A stretch of 64,000 nucleotides of DNA, taken from positions 1,798,001 through 1,862,000 of the forward strand of contig OZ218963.1 in the NCBI GenBank assembly GCA_965112735.1. Direction: 5' to 3'. Origin of the DNA: Phaeosaccion multiseriatum (taxonomy: Eukaryota; Protista; Ochrophyta, other classes). Below the pieces are notes generated by a model that did no database searches, was not told the DNA's origin, and saw nothing but the letters and a program-made list of their open reading frames with translations. Both the position numbers and the translations under genes were made by a program. Positions 2,404 to 57,435 of this stretch are shown here, in pieces. How positions within the stretch are numbered: the first letter of the stretch is position 1; every line of letters starts with the position of its first letter.

Positions 2404-2655
2404 TCGGGTCCAGGCGAGGTTTCTCGGGCCCGATAAAGCAGAAGCCTGCGGCGGCCTGCGGCCGAAAGTAAGAAGCCTGCGGCTGGCCTGCGGCCAGAAG
2501 CCTGCAGAAAGTAGCGAGAAGCCTGCCAAGTCCCCCATTTTTCTCCCAGCCTGAGAAGCCTGAAGCCTGACCACTGGCCTGCGGCCAGAAGCCCGAAGCC
2601 TGGAGGGGGCTACGGCCCAGAAGCCTAAAGCCCGAGAAACCTCGCCTGGAGCCGA
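2404..2655. mobile_element. MITE (252 bp) with ~26-bp TIRs and AGGCAG target-site duplication
   Basis: Left tcgggtccaggcgaggtttctcgggc (2404-2429) and right gcccgagaaacctcgcctggagccga (2630-2655), one mismatch. aggcag lies at 2398-2403 and 2656-2661. Internal GAAGCCTG subrepeats. A second copy of the interior starts at 44537. Confidence 0.85.
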
Positions 2656-7754: not shown

Positions 7755-8828
7755 GGTGGTGGTGGTGGTGGTGTTGTTGTTGTTGTTGATGTTGGTGGTG
7801 GTGGTGGTCTCCAGACACATTACCATCCCCAAGCAACTCCCGGAGGTGTCTCCCGTATGCGATAGTCTCCAGTTCGTACTTACCGACATGGACATTCCCC
7901 AAGTCAACAAGTTTGCGGAGGCATGCGGGGATCGGGGGTTGCCCGTGGAGATCTTTGGTGCTCCCTCGAACGCGCGTTTCTTCCGCAACTGGCTCTTCCA
8001 TGAGGACAGCCACAAGCAGTTTGACAGCCTGGGCCAGACGCAGGTAGATGTTTGTTGGCTTGTGTAGCGGTGTCAGCTTGTAGAGGGGGGTGTGGGGGGG
8101 GGGGAGGGCTCACCTCGACTTTTGGTTTGGAATGGTCCCACACAATATCGAGACAATGGGCTGGGGACCCCTATCGTCGGGGAGGGAAGGGGGTTCTAGA
8201 TGCGAGTGCTGAGATTCGGATTCACGTGCTCGGTCATGGACGCAGGAGCTCCTTCTTACCGTTCCTCTCCTCCTCCTCCTCCTCCTCCTCCTCCTCCTCC
8301 TCCTCCTCCTCCTCCTCCTCCTCCTCCTCCTCCTCCTCCTCCTCCTCCTCCTCCTCCTCCTCCTCCTCCTCCTCCTCCTCCTCCTCCTCCTCCTCCTCCT
8401 CCTCCTCCTCCTCCTCCTCCTCCTCCTCCTCCTCCTCCTCCTCCTCCTCCTCCTCCTCCTCCTCCTCCTCCTCCTCCTCCTCCTCCTCCTCCTCCTCCTC
8501 CTCCTCCTTCCTCCTCCTCCTCCTTCTTCCTCCTCCTCCTCCCTCCTCTCCTCCTCCTCCTCCTCCTCCTCCTCCTCCTCCTCCTCCTCCTCCTCCTCCT
8601 CCTCCTCTACCTCCTCCTCCTCCTCCTCCTCCTCCTCCTCCTCCTCCCTCCTCCCCCTCTTCCCCCTCCCCCTCCCCCTCCCCCTTCTCCTCTTCCTCCC
8701 CCTCCCTCCAGCGTCTGATTGAGTACTCAGCGGACATACGCCTTCCACTCATGTTCGAGGATGACGACTTTGAGACAATCTGCATCATTGTCGAGGAAGC
8801 TTTAGAGGAAGCCATCAGCAGGGCCTAG
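4361..8828 (+). CDS. Plastid-targeted PLP-dependent aminotransferase, DegT/DnrJ/EryC1/StrS family (~12 exons)
   Basis: Presequence MKIAVTAALVSCSTAFV. Motifs PIPEAGIEAAVALMRTGRLYRYN, VLSNAFTFGAVPSAI, SHMRG, LIEDCAH, FSSQSYKMLNSGEGG (PLP lysine). Exons approx. 4361-4531, 4683-4733, 4906-5105, 5258-5315, 5506-5596, 5764-5842, 6021-6100, 6423-6590, 6962-7073, 7381-7457, 7815-8043, 8712-8828. Confidence 0.9.
7681..7808 (+). repeat. (TTG)n/(GTG)n compound microsatellite at the 3' end of an intron
   Basis: Directly visible, ending just before the ccag acceptor at 7814. Confidence 0.95.
8268..8705 (+). repeat. (CCT)n microsatellite in the last aminotransferase intron
   Basis: About 80 perfect CCT units followed by degenerate units up to the acceptor at 8711. 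Confidence 0.95.
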
Positions 8829-19212: not shown

Positions 19213-20117
19213 TCTGTCTCTGTTTTTCTCTCTACTGCGGTCGCTTCTGCTGCTGCTGCTGCTGGTGCTGCCGCCGCCGCCGTTGTTTCCTCAGCTGTGG
19301 CCACATCTCTCGCAGCCTTCAGCGCGGCTGCGACATTAGCCTCACTACCAGGATTGTCCATCGGGTTCGCTCTCTTAGTTAGAGCAAGGTAGTCCACCGG
19401 AGGGAAGCTCATCCCAGCCCCTGGGGTGGACGCAGCAGCAGCAGCACCACCGAGCTGCTGACCCGGTGTAAAAGGGGTTGCTTCTTTCCATACAGATGCT
19501 GCTGCTACCCGTGAGCTCGATTCCTGTTTTACAGAGTGCATGGGTTGGTGGCCTTCAACAGTGGGTACAAGGCTATCACTCGGACAAGCTAAAAGTTTGG
19601 ATCCACTCACCGCACATGCTTCTTCTTCTTCTTCTTCTTCTTCTTCTTCTTCTTCTTCTTCTTCTCCTCCTCCTCCTCCTCCTCCTCCTCCTCCTCCTCC
19701 TCCTCCTCCTCCTCCTCCCCCTCCTCCTCCTCCTCCTCCTCCTCCTCGTGGTGGTGGTGCAACATGCTCTGCATTCGGAATGTGGGGATTCGCTTTCGCC
19801 GCCGTGGCAGTCGCGATTTGGGTGATCCAATCCAGACCTTGAGGAATCACGAGGCAGGAAGGAGAGGTGAGAGAGTCAGAGATCAAGAGAAGTTGGAAAG
19901 GGAGAAGAGAGGAGGCGCGAGGGAGAGAGAAGAGGGAACACAAAAAGAACGGGAGAGAGGAGCTTGAGGGGGGGGAAGGGGGGAGAGGAGAGAGGAGGGG
20001 GGAGTAGAGGAGGGTGAGAGGAGGAGCGTAAGAGGGGAGGAGGGGGAGGAGAGAGCAGAGAGTCAGGGGGAAGGGTGACAGAGAGGGGAGACAGGGGAAA
20101 AGGAGGGGGAGGGAGCA

Positions 20118-20162
<45 letters not shown>

Positions 20163-20412
20163 GAAGAGGGAAGGGAGAGGGAGAGGAGGGAGAGAGGGAG
20201 AGAGGAGAGAGAGGAGAGAGAGAAGACACACATTCACGCACACACACATAGAGAGAGAGAGAGAGGGGGGGGGGGGGGGGGAAGAGACAGAGAGAGACAG
20301 ACGGACGGAGAGAGGCAGAGGAGGAAAGAGAGAGAGAGAGGGAGAGGAGGGAGAGAGGGAGAGAGGAGAGAGAGGAGAGAGAAAAGACACACATTCACAC
20401 ACACACACACAC

Positions 20413-20473
<61 letters not shown>

Positions 20474-20659
20474 AGAGACAGAGAGAGACAGACAGACAGA
20501 GAGAGGCAGAGGAGGAAAGAGAGAGATAGATGTTGAGGAGAGAAGAGGGAGACAGAGGAGAGAGAGGGCTCAGCATATAAGCATATAGTATAGCATAAAT
20601 ATTAACATACCTGTCATCCTGCTTTCTGATATGATATGTGCGTTTTGTCTGTCTTCGCA
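16685..20659 (-). CDS. Multi-exon low-complexity/coiled-coil protein, function unknown; start uncertain (20659 or 20726)
   Basis: Exons chain in frame: GLDWITQIAT...KKETSWEK, MPKMRTLVQRRYAAEAIHRAEEVQLLQTRLQRLKE, RTAESHMLLKK...GTIQ, ...ERALARALEAERRARQQ...*. Includes a GC-AG intron at 18717-18367. Confidence 0.55.
19860..20570 (+). repeat. (GA)n/(CA)n purine-rich intronic low-complexity tract with internal duplication
   Basis: Long AG runs; the unit agacacacattcac..cacatagagagag occurs twice (~20225 and ~20385). Confidence 0.9.
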
Positions 20660-40716: not shown

Positions 40717-40922
40717 CAAATTTTTGATCTTACAATGTACAAGGTGATGCTTCGGGCTGCGCCCTCGGCAGGGAGGAGGAGGAGGAGAGAAGAGGGTTGG
40801 AGTCGGCAAGAAGTGGGAGAGTGGGGGGGAGGAAGGTGAAAGGGGGAGGCGAGGCAGGAGGAGCAGGGACTCACAAATGGCGAGTGCAGGATGTGGAAAG
40901 ACTCAGAAAATCGGCTCCAGGC

Positions 40923-43871
40923 AGTTCTCTGTAGTCCGTATGTCTAATAGTACCGTGATGTGGGGCACCTGCCCCACGAAATTATGGTTTTGGATATTTT
41001 ATGGGCCACAAATGCTCGTTTTTCAAGTTTTTTATCCAATATTTTTTGGTTGTGGGGCATTCTCCCCCCCCTCCCCACATGGATTTTTATTCATTCACAG
41101 CATCAGCATATTTGCACAGGGCAGCTATGTAAGAGGAGCAGCGGCTGCGCGGACGATACCCGGCTGTAACAGCTGATGCCAGTGGTGGGAGGGGCATCTC
41201 CCACGTGAATTTGCAGGAGAACAGAGCATACCATGGCTGACGTCGCTGTTGCTACGGTTCCGGAAGCACCAGCAGCAGAGGGGGAAGAAGCACCGCTTAC
41301 TGCAGAGCAGCAGCAGATTCAGAACCTCCGAAACAACACCATCGCCCCACGCTCGAGAAGTGGATATGCATGCGCCTCCACCATGCTGATCCGATACCTC
41401 TTCCGCAAGCACCCGGAGCTACTGGACCCTGACTTCAGGACAGCATTTGCTCCACCGGAAGGGGAAGAGGAGGAAGACGGGGAAGATGGGGAAGAGGAGG
41501 AAGCACAGAGGAGAGCAGCAGCAGCCGCAGCAGCCGCCGCACCTGGCGGAGCGGGTGGTGCCACTGCAGCGGCACAGCAGACGCCGGCTGAGGTGTCGAG
41601 AGCAGCGAAAGCCCAAGCAAAGGCCAAGAAGAAGGCTGAGGCGCAGTGGACGAAGCGGGTGAAGGCACACTTGATCCAAGCACCTCGGGCGCCGCACCCT
41701 TTGCTGTTCCATCTGCTGACAGCCGACGCGTTCTTCGGGTGGCTGCTTGAAGTCAAGAAGGGGCCGAAGGGCTTATCCAAGGCCGGTGCACAGTCGAAAC
41801 GCTCTGCACTCTTCAATCTGTACAGAGACTACCATCAGGAGGAACAGCACCGCAAATTGCAAAGCGACCTTGCGACGCTGACCAAGGGGCTGAAGAGGAC
41901 GATCGCAGGAGAGAAGCAGGAGGGAAATGTCGAAGTCAGAGAAGGGAAGGCTCCCATGCCGTTCGCTCTCTACCGCGCTCTTGCCAAAGGTAAATTCCCA
42001 GCTGTGTGGAGTCAGTGGACAGTGGAAACTAGTGGAGTGGGTGGAGACAAGTGGCTGATGCATTGAATGCCCCCCACTCACTTCCTAGCCCTGACGCCGT
42101 CTTTGGTTGCCACTGTTTCCTTCGCTTGTGTACATCGCAGCAATGCTGAGCTCGGCAGTCTGTGAGAACGGGCACAGACAGGGCGCCTTTGGCCACCCCT
42201 TCCTCGTTCTCTCCTGGAATCTGATGTGCCGCGCCACCAACTGTGTGGAGATTTGTCTCGATCATCTCGAGTGGAAGGGGGACGCGCTCTGCGTCTATTT
42301 TGGGAAGCAAAAGGGCGATCAGCTGGGAGAGAAGGCCCGACATCCTCGCCACGTCTACGCGAATCCAATCATGCCGGAGATCTGCCCCGTCCTCGCGCTT
42401 GGTGTTTACCTCCTGAGCTTTGGTTTTGAGAAGAACGCGCTGTTCGCTGGCAACAATCAGTACGATAGGTATTGCGGCTTCCTCAGACGTACGGCGGCGG
42501 CGAACTCGTCCATTTTGGAAGGCATGGGGCTGACTCCAGAGGACCTCGGCACTCATTCTGGGCGCAAGGGCGCTGCCTCGCACGTCACAAGCGGCTCGTC
42601 CGCTGCTCCCAACCCAATTGCTGTGCAACTTCGAATGGGATGGTCTCTTCCCGGCGTGCAGGGCATCTACTTCAACCCCATCAATGCAGCAGATCAGTAT
42701 GTGGGCCGGGCTGCCTCCGGCGCGAACATCTCAGCGAAGGAGTTTGCATTGCTTCCTCCCTTTTTTCAGCGCCTCAAGGTGGACGGCACAGCGAAGGAGG
42801 GCATTGAAGACGTGCTCGCGGGAGCCATTGTGAGCTGCTTCAGGGACGTGCCGCTGAGATTGAGGAAGGTGGCTGAATTCTGTCTTGCCAGTGTGGTGTA
42901 CCACGCCGGCTTTCTGCGCAGCACTCTTCAGGAGAATCACCCTCTTTTCACGACACAGCTCTTCCGAGATCAAAGGTTGCTGGCGGACCTTTCAGAGCAT
43001 GTCGTGCTGAAGTATCCGGACGAGACGGACGAGATTTCTGCAACCGGGATTCCTCCCCACGTCGTGCAGCTGAGGCAATTCCAAGTCGTGGCGGACAGCG
43101 TGGCCTCTCTAGGCGGCAAGCTTGAGGTGTTGGGCCAGACGATCAAGGTCGACTTGGAGACGCTGATCCGTGACGTTCTGGAGGAGAATGCACAGGCCTC
43201 TGGCACTGTCACCAGTCTGGGTGTGAGCAGGGCCCTGCAGACGACCCTCGACGCAGCCTTTTCTAAGAGTGGGCTCAGCGACCTTCTCGCGGCTCACCAG
43301 GCAGGCACTCTGGGCCTTGGTGAGGGTTCGAGCAGCGCCCCGCCCTCTTCTTCTTGTGCAGGTGCAGATCAGCCACCTCTGTATCTCTACAACGGCCGGT
43401 GGCATACCCTTCCCGAGCACTTTGAGGTCCCTAGCTTCACTGTGCGCGCTGCTTGGGATGCTTGGATGACAGGCACTCCTCGCCTTCGAGAATTCACGAC
43501 AGCAGACGTGCAGGGGAGGGCGGAGAAGCGAAGGATGTCAAAATTTTGCTGTTTGATGGGTGCGATTGAATCCGCGGCGAAAGAAAAGGGGCTCTGGAAG
43601 GACAAGCCGACGCTTGAAGAAGCGCGAAGCATGTTTGACGCAGTCAAAGACGCCTTTGACATCAAGTCTCGTTCTGATTCTCACAAGCGCCGCTTCAATC
43701 AGCTGGTGTGGACCACCGTGTATAATTTATGGAGCGCGCAGCAGGCGGACGCGAAAAAACGGGCGAAGCGGGCGAGGGCGAAGGAAAGTGGCACTGGTGC
43801 AGACGAGTCGAAGGAGGGGGATGGAGGTGATAGCGGTGCAGAGGACGACGAGGAGGGAGGTGGCAGCAGCA

Positions 43872-43905
<34 letters not shown>

Positions 43906-44536
43906 AACAGGAGGAGGCGGAGCCGGAGGAGGACGAGGAGGAAGGGGTGGGGGAAGGGGGGCCCAAAAAAAACAGCGTACTGGTACTGGTACTGCTTCTG
44001 ATGCTGCTTCTGCTGCTGCCTCTGATGCGGCCGCTGCGGCCGCTACTGCCGCTGCTGCCGCGTCAGCAGCGCCGTCGTTGGGCGGCTTGAGAGAGGGAGA
44101 CATGGCCTTCACATGCTCGTATGGCTGTACTAAGCCCTCGCAAGTCAAGCTGTTCCTCTGCCCATCCGAAAGAGCGTGTGGAAACCTCGTGCACCACATG
44201 TGCACCGTCGAGTTTTGCGACAGCAAGGGTTTTGCGGAAGGCGATTTTGACTGCTACTGTAAGCCATGCATGATTGAGGACGGACACTAAGTGTGTCTGT
44301 AAATATGAATACCATTGTTATCGTGGTAATACCATTAAATCGTCATATCATAGCGTAGTATATTTTGGAGGAGGAGGGGAGAGATACACACACAAAAAAG
44401 GAGGGGGGGGGGGAGGGGCGCTACTGGTCCATATTGGGTACTGTACTAAAAATACCCACTTTTAAAAAAATTGGGTACTAAAAATACCCACTTTCACCGA
44501 GTGGGGCATCTCGCCCCACCAAAACCGGTCATCAAT
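40923..44536 (+). mobile_element. Crypton-type tyrosine-recombinase DNA transposon, nested in a MITE TIR
   Basis: Contains the recombinase ORF. Flanked by the two halves of the MITE TIR (tcggctccaggc 40911-40922; aggtttctcgggcc from 44537). Subterminal palindromes at 40960-40977 and 44501-44519. Confidence 0.8.
41233..44290 (+). CDS. Crypton tyrosine recombinase with GCR1_C-like region and C-terminal PHD-like finger (2 exons, 968 aa)
   Basis: Exons 41233-41989 and 42141-44290, phase-1 GT-AG intron, no internal stops. Catalytic set: R (WNLMCRATN), K (KQKGDQ), HxxR (GTHSGRKG), W (RMGW), Y (VQGIYF). Also RHVYANP..PEICPVLALG and a C-terminal C-x3-C-x10-C-x5-C-x4-H-x2-C-x18-C-x2-C motif. Confidence 0.9.
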
Positions 44537-44720
44537 AGGTTTCTCGGGCCGATAAAGCAGAAGCCTGCGGCGGCCTGCGGCCGAAAGTAAGAAGCCTGCG
44601 GCTGGCCTGCGGCCAGAAGCCTGCAGAAAGTAGCGAAAAGCCTGCCAAGTCCCCCATTTTTCTTCCAGCCTGCGAAGCCTGAAGCCTGGCCACTGCCTGG
44701 CCTGCGGCCAGAAGCCTGGC
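44537..44720. mobile_element. Second, interrupted and truncated copy of the 2404-2655 MITE
   Basis: Near-identical to 2417-2595. The outer part of its TIR is at 40911-40922; no right TIR was seen. Confidence 0.85.
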
Positions 44721-45068
44721 TGCGATGCGTCTCCGCACTTGAGCTGCTGGGCCTGCAGGTCATCCATGCAGGAAATCGGCTGCCGCGTGGAGGAAGTGGG
44801 TGGGAAGGCTGTTAGCCTCCGAGCCAGGGCAGTGGCGACCCTTCTCGAACTGCAACTCACCTGGTGGTCTGCTGCTCACTCCAACCCTCCTACAAGTGAC
44901 GTAGAAGATATGTGAAATATGAAGATATGAAGTGATGATGTATTGATAGACGCGCTACTGTCCTACTCCACCCCTTCACTTATTTCTTGTCCTGACACTT
45001 ATCCTAGTGCCTTGCCTGTCCCTTTGCCTTTGTTCCTTCCCTTGCCCTGTCTCGCCTACTTGCCACAC

Positions 45069-45387
45069 CACGGCCTCGTCACTGAATCCCTCCCACTGTC
45101 CCGAATCTGACCAAAATAGACGTCCTCGATATCCAATGTCGATGTCCTGCCTCTATAGAGGCCTACCGCTCACTCCAAGATAGAAATTCCTTGTCCTTAC
45201 ACTTGCCTCCATGTCCGGTGTGTCCTTGTCCATATCACTTTTGCCTCCTGCACGGCCTTGTCACTTCCCTTTGCCCCCTACACGGCCTCATCCCTTTGCC
45301 CCCACACGGCCTCGTCACTGAATCCCTCCCACTGCCCCGAATCTGACCAAAATAGACGTCCTCGATATCCAATGTCGATGTCCTGCC
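45069..45387 (+). repeat. 83-bp direct repeat pair
   Basis: 45069-45151 and 45305-45387 differ at one base. Confidence 0.9.
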
Positions 45388-46602
45388 CATACACTAACAA
45401 GGCGAAAGACTCGAAGTCTGCAGGAGAGAAGACAGAGGAGGGGAAGGAGAAGAGGAGGCTGCAGGAGAGAAGACAGACGAAGAGAATTCATGGGCGTGAC
45501 AGAGAAGACAAAAAAAAGAAAAGAAAAAAAGGCACAGCGTGTGCTGGTCCGAAGGGAGGTGAAAAGTTATCTTCAAGCGGAGTTTCCCGCACGAAGGGGG
45601 CGCCCAGCGTGCTGGAGGAGGTACCGGGGAGCCTGTACTACAGGAAAAGGCAGTGGGGAGCCGGTCCGGAGGAAAATCGTAGAGGCATATGGTTAGAGCG
45701 CTGAGCGTGCAGTATTTTGGACATGGGAGAGGAAGGGAGAAAGGGCGGTACTTTGTTGGCACAATAGGAATCACCTAAGAAACTGAAAGTGTGATTGTGA
45801 GTGTGTGAGTGTGTGTGCGTGTGTGTTATCTTGAGGGCTATCTCTGGCTGGAAGAAGTTTTTAGTCCCCGAGGTCGTTTCCCATCGGAACAACAACAGTT
45901 GATGCCGACCAGAACCCGGCGGCGAATCGATCTCTCTTGGCGGGCCCGCTGGAGCGCCACAGCCAAGCGCCTCCGAATGACACAAACAGCTCGTGCATAA
46001 GCCCTCATGTTCGATCATGTTCACGGCGTTCGTGCTTCGTGCCCCAGCCATGTGGGTGGCGAGTGTTTTGATAAACACCTGACTTCTTGAAGGACCAAAT
46101 ACCCCTTGCTGTTCCATCCCTTCATGTTCACCGTCCGTGAGGTGGAGTGCTCTCCTGGCTGCCTTCTTGGTCGGCCGAAGAAGGAGCCACGCACCACCAG
46201 CCCCCTTCACGCTTTGGCTGAGGGCCCTGGCCAGGCCCTTCTCCCGTCCGTCCTGCGCTGGGATCGCTTTCAGGCGTTCCAGAAAGTCTGTCCTCGCCTT
46301 CGACGTGAGGAGCTCGGTCAAGCGCTTCTACACCCCTCGCCTTTCCCCCTGTCGGCTCTGTGGGATGGGAGGGTCCACCCCCGTCCAACATCTTCGTCTC
46401 CTCGGTCCGCCAGTGTTTTGGCATCATCATCAGCTCCTAGTTCCTCTTCATGCTCACCCCCTGGGTCTTCGTCACTCCCACCCCCTGGGTCTGCGCATGT
46501 TGGTGGTATGAAACCCTCCTACACACACACTTCGACACACTGGAACACACTTCCCGTTTCAGTTTACAAGAAAATGCCTCCTCCTTTACACTTACACGTT
46601 AG

Positions 46603-57200: not shown

Positions 57201-57275
57201 GCGTGGCCGCCGTTCATGGACTTGCACTGACTTGGATAGCGACGCGGATAGATTGGGCCACCCAGGCGGATGAGG

Positions 57276-57435
<160 letters not shown>

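Follow-up and report, generated by a model that had tools for sequence, protein, structure and literature searches.

A Crypton family with base-exact ends in the alga Phaeosaccion multiseriatum, and evidence for the insertion of one copy into the terminal inverted repeat of a MITE

We analyzed a stretch of 64,000 nucleotides from the ochrophyte alga Phaeosaccion multiseriatum (assembly GCA_965112735.1, contig OZ218963.1, positions 1,798,001 to 1,862,000 of the forward strand), which is called the window throughout. The window contains one copy of a Crypton, a transposable element (TE) that encodes a tyrosine recombinase (YR), and this copy stands between two segments of a miniature inverted-repeat transposable element (MITE); the coordinates of these features, numbered from the first letter of the window, are collected in Table 1. 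The window copy of the Crypton starts AGTTCTCTGTAG and ends GGTCATCAAT. Its limits were fixed by comparing all copies in the genome (67 Mb in 22 contigs), each with 500-bp flanks. There are 32 full-length copies and one 5′-truncated copy. At the left end the first 28 nt, beginning with AGTTCTCTG, are identical in 32 of 32 copies; at the right end the 24-mer that closes with GGTCATCAAT is followed by AG in 31 cases, and two other right ends carry small near-end variants. The flanks of all copies diverge exactly at AGTTCTCTG on one side and at CATCAAT-AG on the other. None of the 32 aligned copies ends elsewhere, so the ends at 40923 and 44536 that a preliminary description of this stretch had proposed are exact. 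The boundary is nonetheless ambiguous by two bases (40925-44538 being equivalent) because AG lies on both sides, an ambiguity that is inherent to the structure. The two ends, AGTTCTCTG and CATCAAT, are unrelated to each other and there are no long direct terminal repeats; a self-comparison of the element revealed no terminal inverted repeats (TIRs), its only matches being GCA/TGC microsatellites. A short palindrome lies just inside each end (Table 1). The two palindromes are related to each other, the right one is kept in degraded form in the older relatives L070 and L071, and both are candidate protein-binding sites. The preliminary description had also pointed to the pentamer AATAG, which does occur at 40946-40950 and again at 44534-44538; the inner one belongs to the element and is present in every copy. 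A special role for this repeat was rejected, as no test gave significance and a 5-mer recurs by chance about once per kilobase.

The element carries one recombinase gene, whose two exons and inferred intron fill 41233-44290; the other open reading frames (ORFs) are at most 199 aa long, and nearly all overlap the recombinase gene. Exon 2 encodes a catalytic domain with R30, K57, H138, R141, W167 and Y175 (exon-2 numbering) as the catalytic residues, and the arrangement R30, K57, H138-x-x-R141, W167 and Y175 is conserved in alignments of 22-41 homologues; the pattern R..K..HxxR..W..Y is kept in 40 homologues, which derive from oomycetes, one xanthophyte, one chytrid and metagenomes. A word search returned 200 homologues, whose catalytic domains show 36-50% identity to that of the element. 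Only a few bear an organism name, and these come from Phytophthora, Aphanomyces, Globisporangium, Lagenidium, Tribonema and a chytrid; integrase is the label of several homologues, and Ndc10 domain-containing that of one. The two exons were searched separately. Pfam gave sub-threshold matches only for both exons, among them a weak SAM-like integrase match to the N-terminal part of exon 1, and no GCR1_C, DUF3504, DDE, nuclease or other enzyme domain was detected in either. Searches of PDB sequences with a single sequence and with a 22-sequence profile retrieved no recombinase, and the fold was therefore established through structure prediction and Foldseek. The AlphaFold (AF2) model of exon 2 residues 1-300 has a pLDDT (predicted local distance difference test) of 91, and among the Foldseek matches listed all are tyrosine recombinases (Flp, Ndc10, Cre, XerH and the Tn1549 Int), with probabilities that are mostly 0.9-1.0 and at the lowest 0.51, and with weak E-values of 5e-3 to 0.3. 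Pfam likewise found no reverse transcriptase, RNase H or methyltransferase in the two exons, which sets the element apart from DIRS, Ngaro and PAT. With a single YR gene, no reverse transcriptase and no terminal repeats, the element is therefore a Crypton by definition. The Cys/His-rich tail of the recombinase (44092-44290) follows a long Ala/Gly/Ser low-complexity tract; this tract is encoded by (GCT)n-type microsatellites, which are the main source of length variation among the copies.

The sequences that flank the window copy belong to a family of small, non-coding MITEs with the TIR TCGGCTCCAGGCGAGGTTTCTCGGGC. The copies scored number at least 40 and are 252-278 bp long; about 20 intact copies have target-site duplications (TSDs) of 6 bp, and the genome holds 87 perfect copies of the 20-nt TIR core. 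An intact reference copy is present elsewhere in the window (Table 1). As the preliminary description had it, TCGGCTCCAGGC occupies the 12 nt to the left of the Crypton, and AGGTTTCTCGGGC together with the MITE interior resumes at 44537, directly to its right. The 150 nt that follow AGGTTTCTCGGGC at 44537 are 97% identical to the MITE interior (family D12). When 40800-40922 was joined to 44537-45100 and searched with BLAST, the product gave one contiguous alignment, running from 40911 to 44722, with about 25 MITE copies. The interrupted copy lacks the right 60-80 bp of the MITE, including the right TIR. Use of an interrupted older repeat as a paralogous empty site is a routine device in the curation of TE boundaries, and three other insertions of the Crypton also have paralogous empty sites, each with a single AG. 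The 32 copies and these empty sites back the earlier suggestion of a nested, recombinase-mediated insertion without a long TSD. Based on these results, we consider it highly probable that a Crypton, by means of its own tyrosine recombinase, integrated in the left TIR of an older MITE copy that is now truncated on the right.

To describe the choice of target, we reconstructed the 32 insertion sites and used the 9,302 AG sites of the window as background. AG is invariant, being present at all 32 sites. Downstream of it, position +1 is A or T in 29 of the 32 (background 0.41, p = 5e-9), position +2 is T in 28 (background 0.15, p = 1e-19) and position +3 is A or T in 31 (background 0.39, p = 4e-12); upstream, an A stands at position -6 in 22 (background 0.33, p = 3e-5) and a G at position -1 in only two (background 0.41, p = 1e-5). 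The tetramer AGWT, where W is A or T, is found at 25/32 sites against 5% of the background, and the AT content of the 60 flanking nucleotides is 62% against 43% (p = 2e-19). Most targets are AT-rich AGAT or AGTT sites. A distinct subclass, AG(G)TTTCT, makes up 5/32 targets as against 0.075% of background AG sites (p = 5e-11); its members are the MITE TIR hit by the window copy and the sites of copies L029, L015, L016 and L024, and it resembles the left end of the element itself, AGTTCTCT. The target is a sequence: AG followed by W-T-W within AT-rich DNA, AG(G)TTTCT forming a favoured subclass.

The chemistry of tyrosine recombinases is conservative and involves no DNA synthesis, and typical members of this group exchange strands at positions 6-8 bp apart. 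According to the Goodwin model, Cryptons integrate when a circular form undergoes recombination with a target site that has a short core in common with it (PMC3212892, PMC13465315), and the active CryptonF-1_cRei, which has CACCG ends and CAYCG targets (Y being C or T), excises cleanly back to the target motif (PMC9977147). From this chemistry, the Goodwin model and the observations on active Cryptons, set beside the ends, the AGs, the target logo and the recombinase observed here, we infer the following route. The element would be excised or copied into a circle, in which its joined ends would read CATCAAT-AG-TTCTCTG. Strand exchange by the recombinase would then take place between this circle junction and an AG of the chromosome that stands in AT-rich AG-W-T-W surroundings. 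The outcome would be one AG on each side, one of the two being supplied by the element, and no duplication would be synthesised. The AG at 44537-44538, noted at the junction in the preliminary description along with that at 40923-40924, is likely to be the shared core or crossover dinucleotide.

Several observations weigh against this account. The invariant shared core is only 2 bp, compared with 4-6 bp in described Cryptons, and the shared repeat reaches 4 bp (AGTT) in the 10/32 targets with T at +1 as well as at +2. No heteroduplex-type variation across a 6-8-bp overlap is seen at the constant junctions, and the assembly contains no head-to-tail or circle junction. The insertion does lie inside the MITE TIR, but it does not split the TIR cleanly; besides the loss of the right end of the MITE, other MITE TIRs read CAGGCGAGG whereas the left junction here reads CAGGC-AG, so that G13 is missing. 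Uninterrupted G-less TIRs number 0 in the genome, against the 87 perfect TIR 20-mers, which rules out a pre-existing G-less MITE subfamily as the source of the missing base. Therefore the insertion was not perfectly conservative, or a privately mutated copy was hit, or the base was deleted later; in other words, a loss private to the window copy could have arisen by mutation before the insertion, by mutation after it, or through the insertion itself. Two further junctions are also irregular. At L029 (contig 6, 2675046-2678653) a perfect 62-bp direct duplication flanks the element (2674980-2678717), and CAAT, identical to the last four bases of the element, lies between the left 62-bp copy and the AG at the element's start. 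The site, TATCCAAT-AG-GTTTCTC, closely mimics the joined ends of the element. The 62-bp unit is found nowhere else in the genome, and it was accordingly rejected as a repeat family or a miniature non-autonomous element. The left junction of L016 has an extra AGTTTC relative to the consensus of the 23-nt motif in which this copy lies (see below). The missing G13, the L029 duplication and the extra bases of L016 are not predicted by simple conservative recombination, and a repair- or replication-coupled step may have taken part in some events. A tentative and rather doubtful extension is that the recombinase needs only the 2-bp AG core with AT-rich W-T-W, that its sites mimic the joined ends (AG-TTCTCT in the element, AG(G)TTTCT in the target) and that integration is not always conservative. 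If this were true, the missing G13 and the 62-bp duplication of L029 with its CAAT would have been left by a step coupled to replication or repair, such as the 'complex mode of transposition' that is suspected in the active Cryptons of Chlamydomonas.

Alternatively, the AG pair might be a genuine 2-bp TSD, which would arise if a strict AG target were cut in a staggered manner and then filled in by repair synthesis; the TA target of Tc1/mariner elements offers an analogy. That AG flanks every copy and is single in the empty paralogues fits such a duplication as well as a shared core; by sequence alone the two are inseparable, a point that also counts against the shared core, and two irregularities, the single base lost at the MITE and the 62-bp duplication of L029, are hints of repair synthesis in some events. 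We regard a 2-bp TSD as unlikely, given that the sole protein encoded by the element is a tyrosine recombinase, an enzyme of conservative chemistry, that the Pfam searches of both exons revealed no DDE or other nuclease domain, and that the active Chlamydomonas Cryptons, with their clean excision to the target motif, fit the shared-core model (PMC9977147).

The preliminary description further raised a preference of the Crypton for this MITE family, or for MITE or TE chromatin as such, which would make the hit in the TIR family-specific. The 67 Mb contain only some 87-120 TIRs, and if AG sites were chosen at random a single hit among 32 would already be improbable; another copy, L014, is situated 670 bp away from an intact MITE, 7/32 copies reside in a different dispersed repeat or no more than 1.2 kb from it, and the neighbourhood of the window copy is a mosaic of repeats. 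A preference for the family is nevertheless unsupported, because the MITE holds only one of the 32 insertions, and the other 31 have no MITE TIR within 500 bp. Moreover, L029 has hit the same 9-mer as is found in the MITE TIR, AGGTTTCTC, in unique DNA, so that sequence explains the hit in the TIR, and the majority of targets are the plain AGAT and AGTT sites described above. A family-specific attraction thus seems very unlikely; judging from these sites, the window copy most probably entered the MITE TIR owing to AGGTTTCTC, a favoured target variant, and not to the identity of the MITE.

The Crypton is genuinely associated with DNA that is rich in AT and in repeats, as well as with one other repeat. 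Copies L015, L016 and L024 split one 23-nt motif, CTTTCAGTTTCTTAGGTGATTCC, at the identical AG; they belong to two different sub-lineages, their flanks have diverged, and they represent three independent hits. The genome contains 282 copies of this hotspot motif (up to 3 mismatches), each with a single AG. An intact motif lies within 200 bp of L001, L009 and L030, and one lies 1.2 kb from the window copy. The motif often adjoins (TG)n/(CA)n tracts, and its copies share only about 40 bp. It was considered as the TIR of a second MITE and rejected, since it occurs inside longer repeats or beside (TG)n and only those 40 bp or so are shared; possibly it is the 3′ end of a 5′-truncated retroposon family. 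The association with repeats may reflect a preference at insertion or, equally, selection against genic insertions, two effects that are inseparable in a single assembly.

Finally, the notions that the 12-nt match on the left is due to chance, or that the MITE-like flanks are part of the Crypton, can be dismissed: the left side is only 12 nt long and one TIR base is missing, but a 12-mer at a fixed position has a chance probability of about 1.3e-7, TCGGCTCCAGGC occurs in the window at three sites only (both TIRs of the intact MITE and 40911-40922) and is absent from the element and from the ends of the other copies, it meets the junction in the same register as the 186 bp of MITE sequence on the right, and the other 31 copies have no MITE sequence at either end, which refutes the second notion.

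Among known Cryptons, those of the CryptonS group are among the closest in kind. The absence of GCR1_C and DUF3504, together with homologues that include oomycete proteins, points tentatively to this group. Like the CryptonS elements of oomycetes and diatoms (Kojima & Jurka 2011, PMC3212892), the element has a single YR gene without GCR1_C or DUF3504, C-terminal blocks that are conserved with oomycete homologues, and a YR domain that is 40-50% identical to proteins of Phytophthora, Aphanomyces and Globisporangium; like them, it lacks TIRs and long repeats and has a low to moderate copy number. CryptonS elements have terminal direct repeats of 5-6 bp, mostly TATGG (PMC3212892). In contrast, the ends here are AG...CAAT-AG, with AG alone shared and a degenerate W-T-W after it, and TATGG-type termini were not encountered; the Cys/His-rich tail and the algal host are further differences. 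CryptonF-1_cRei of Chlamydomonas reinhardtii (Lopez-Cortegano et al. 2023, PMC9977147) is likewise a young, multi-copy algal Crypton, whose end motif equals its target motif and whose insertion sites are non-random. It differs in its core, of 5 bp rather than 2 bp, and in the GCR1_C domain carried by group F, and its activity was observed directly, whereas activity here is deduced from the near-identity of the copies. The Tn916/CTnDOT-type integrases, bacterial tyrosine recombinases that tolerate heterology in the overlap, also use AT-rich, loosely defined targets; they differ in having variable coupling sequences, where the 32 Crypton copies have invariant ends, and show no sequence relationship to the Crypton recombinase beyond the YR fold. 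The identity requirement of CTnDOT is very short, about 2 bp. From an ordinary nested TE insertion the window case differs only by the missing junction base, and for annotation it is a routine nested insertion in a repeat-rich stretch. The element represents a well-resolved new Crypton family. To our knowledge, Crypton ends are hard to define, and few families offer base-exact termini, a target logo and many young copies. Having all three, along with natural empty sites, this family is therefore a usable test substrate for the way in which eukaryotic tyrosine-recombinase transposons pick their targets, and for cut-and-paste as opposed to copying.

Pairwise substitution divergence among the copies averages 0.5% and does not exceed 1.1%. 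Three sub-lineages are apparent, about 0-8, 20 and 30 substitutions away from the majority, and private substitutions number 0-5 per copy. The reading frame of exon 1 is open in 32/32 copies, that of exon 2, over its full length, in 22/32. There are no non-autonomous derivatives among the element ends found in the genome, because full-length copies account for all of them. The near-identity of the copies suggests a very young family that is plausibly still mobile. In two older relatives, at 81-87% identity, the right ends read CATCAAT-AG and CATCAGT-AG. Older, diverged fragments were found at L070 (contig 14: 2353483-2353900), L071 (contig 1: 2722700-2723700) and L072 (contig 14: 1474763-1475033); they have 76-94% identity, retain the right end CATCAAT or CATCAGT with AG and show a variant left end, AGTTAAGTTTTTGTAG, and L070 consists of two partial Crypton copies placed face to face. 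The 5′-truncated copy, L032, lies 1.7 kb from the full-length L024 and has an identical right flank (contig 1: 4957779-4965986), an arrangement that suggests a local duplication taking in part of the element.

Table 1. Features of the Crypton, the interrupted MITE and related sites in the window
Feature	Position	Strand	Basis or remark
Intact reference MITE, 252 bp, 26-nt TIRs	2404..2655	+	6-bp TSD AGGCAG at 2398-2403 and 2656-2661
AGAAAA, expected left copy of the 6-bp TSD of the interrupted MITE	40905..40910	+	Position relative to TIR; right end lost
MITE left TIR, positions 1-12	40911..40922	+	TCGGCTCCAGGC
Crypton copy, 3,614 bp	40923..44536	+	Ends common to 32 copies, flanks unrelated
AG, left end of the Crypton	40923..40924	+	32/32 copies
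Subterminal palindrome GTGGGGCA-CC-TGCCCCAC, candidate protein-binding site	40960..40977	+	38 nt inside left end
Recombinase gene, exon 1, 252 codons + 1 nt	41233..41989	+	ORF
Inferred phase-1 GT..AG intron	41990..42140	+	Sequence and frames of the two ORFs; splice signals in all copies
Recombinase gene, exon 2	42141..44290	+	YR catalytic domain, conserved C-terminal region, low-complexity tract, Cys/His-rich tail
Subterminal palindrome GTGGGGC-ATCTC-GCCCCAC, candidate protein-binding site	44501..44519	+	17 nt inside right end
AG directly after the right end of the Crypton	44537..44538	+	32/32 copies; MITE TIR positions 14-15
MITE remainder, TIR positions 14-26 and interior to about 190-200 of 252	44537..44722	+	Begins AGGTTTCTCGGGC
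Unoccupied 23-nt motif CTTTC-AG-TTTCTTAGGTGATTCC	45767..45789	-	Paralogous empty site

Downstream of the truncated MITE, at least four further dispersed repeats form a mosaic within 44723-46100 (at about 44917-45151, 45188-45399, 45399-45724 and 45880-46100), and this stretch also includes a local direct repeat of 113 nt (45039-45151 and 45275-45387). Elsewhere in the window, long simple-sequence tracts at 8200-8700, 20100-20560 and 57260-57420 comprise about 400 bp of (CTC)n, arrays of (GA)n/(CA)n and about 150 bp of (GT)n. Introns of the spliceosomal type and a G+C content of 57% are in keeping with an algal source.

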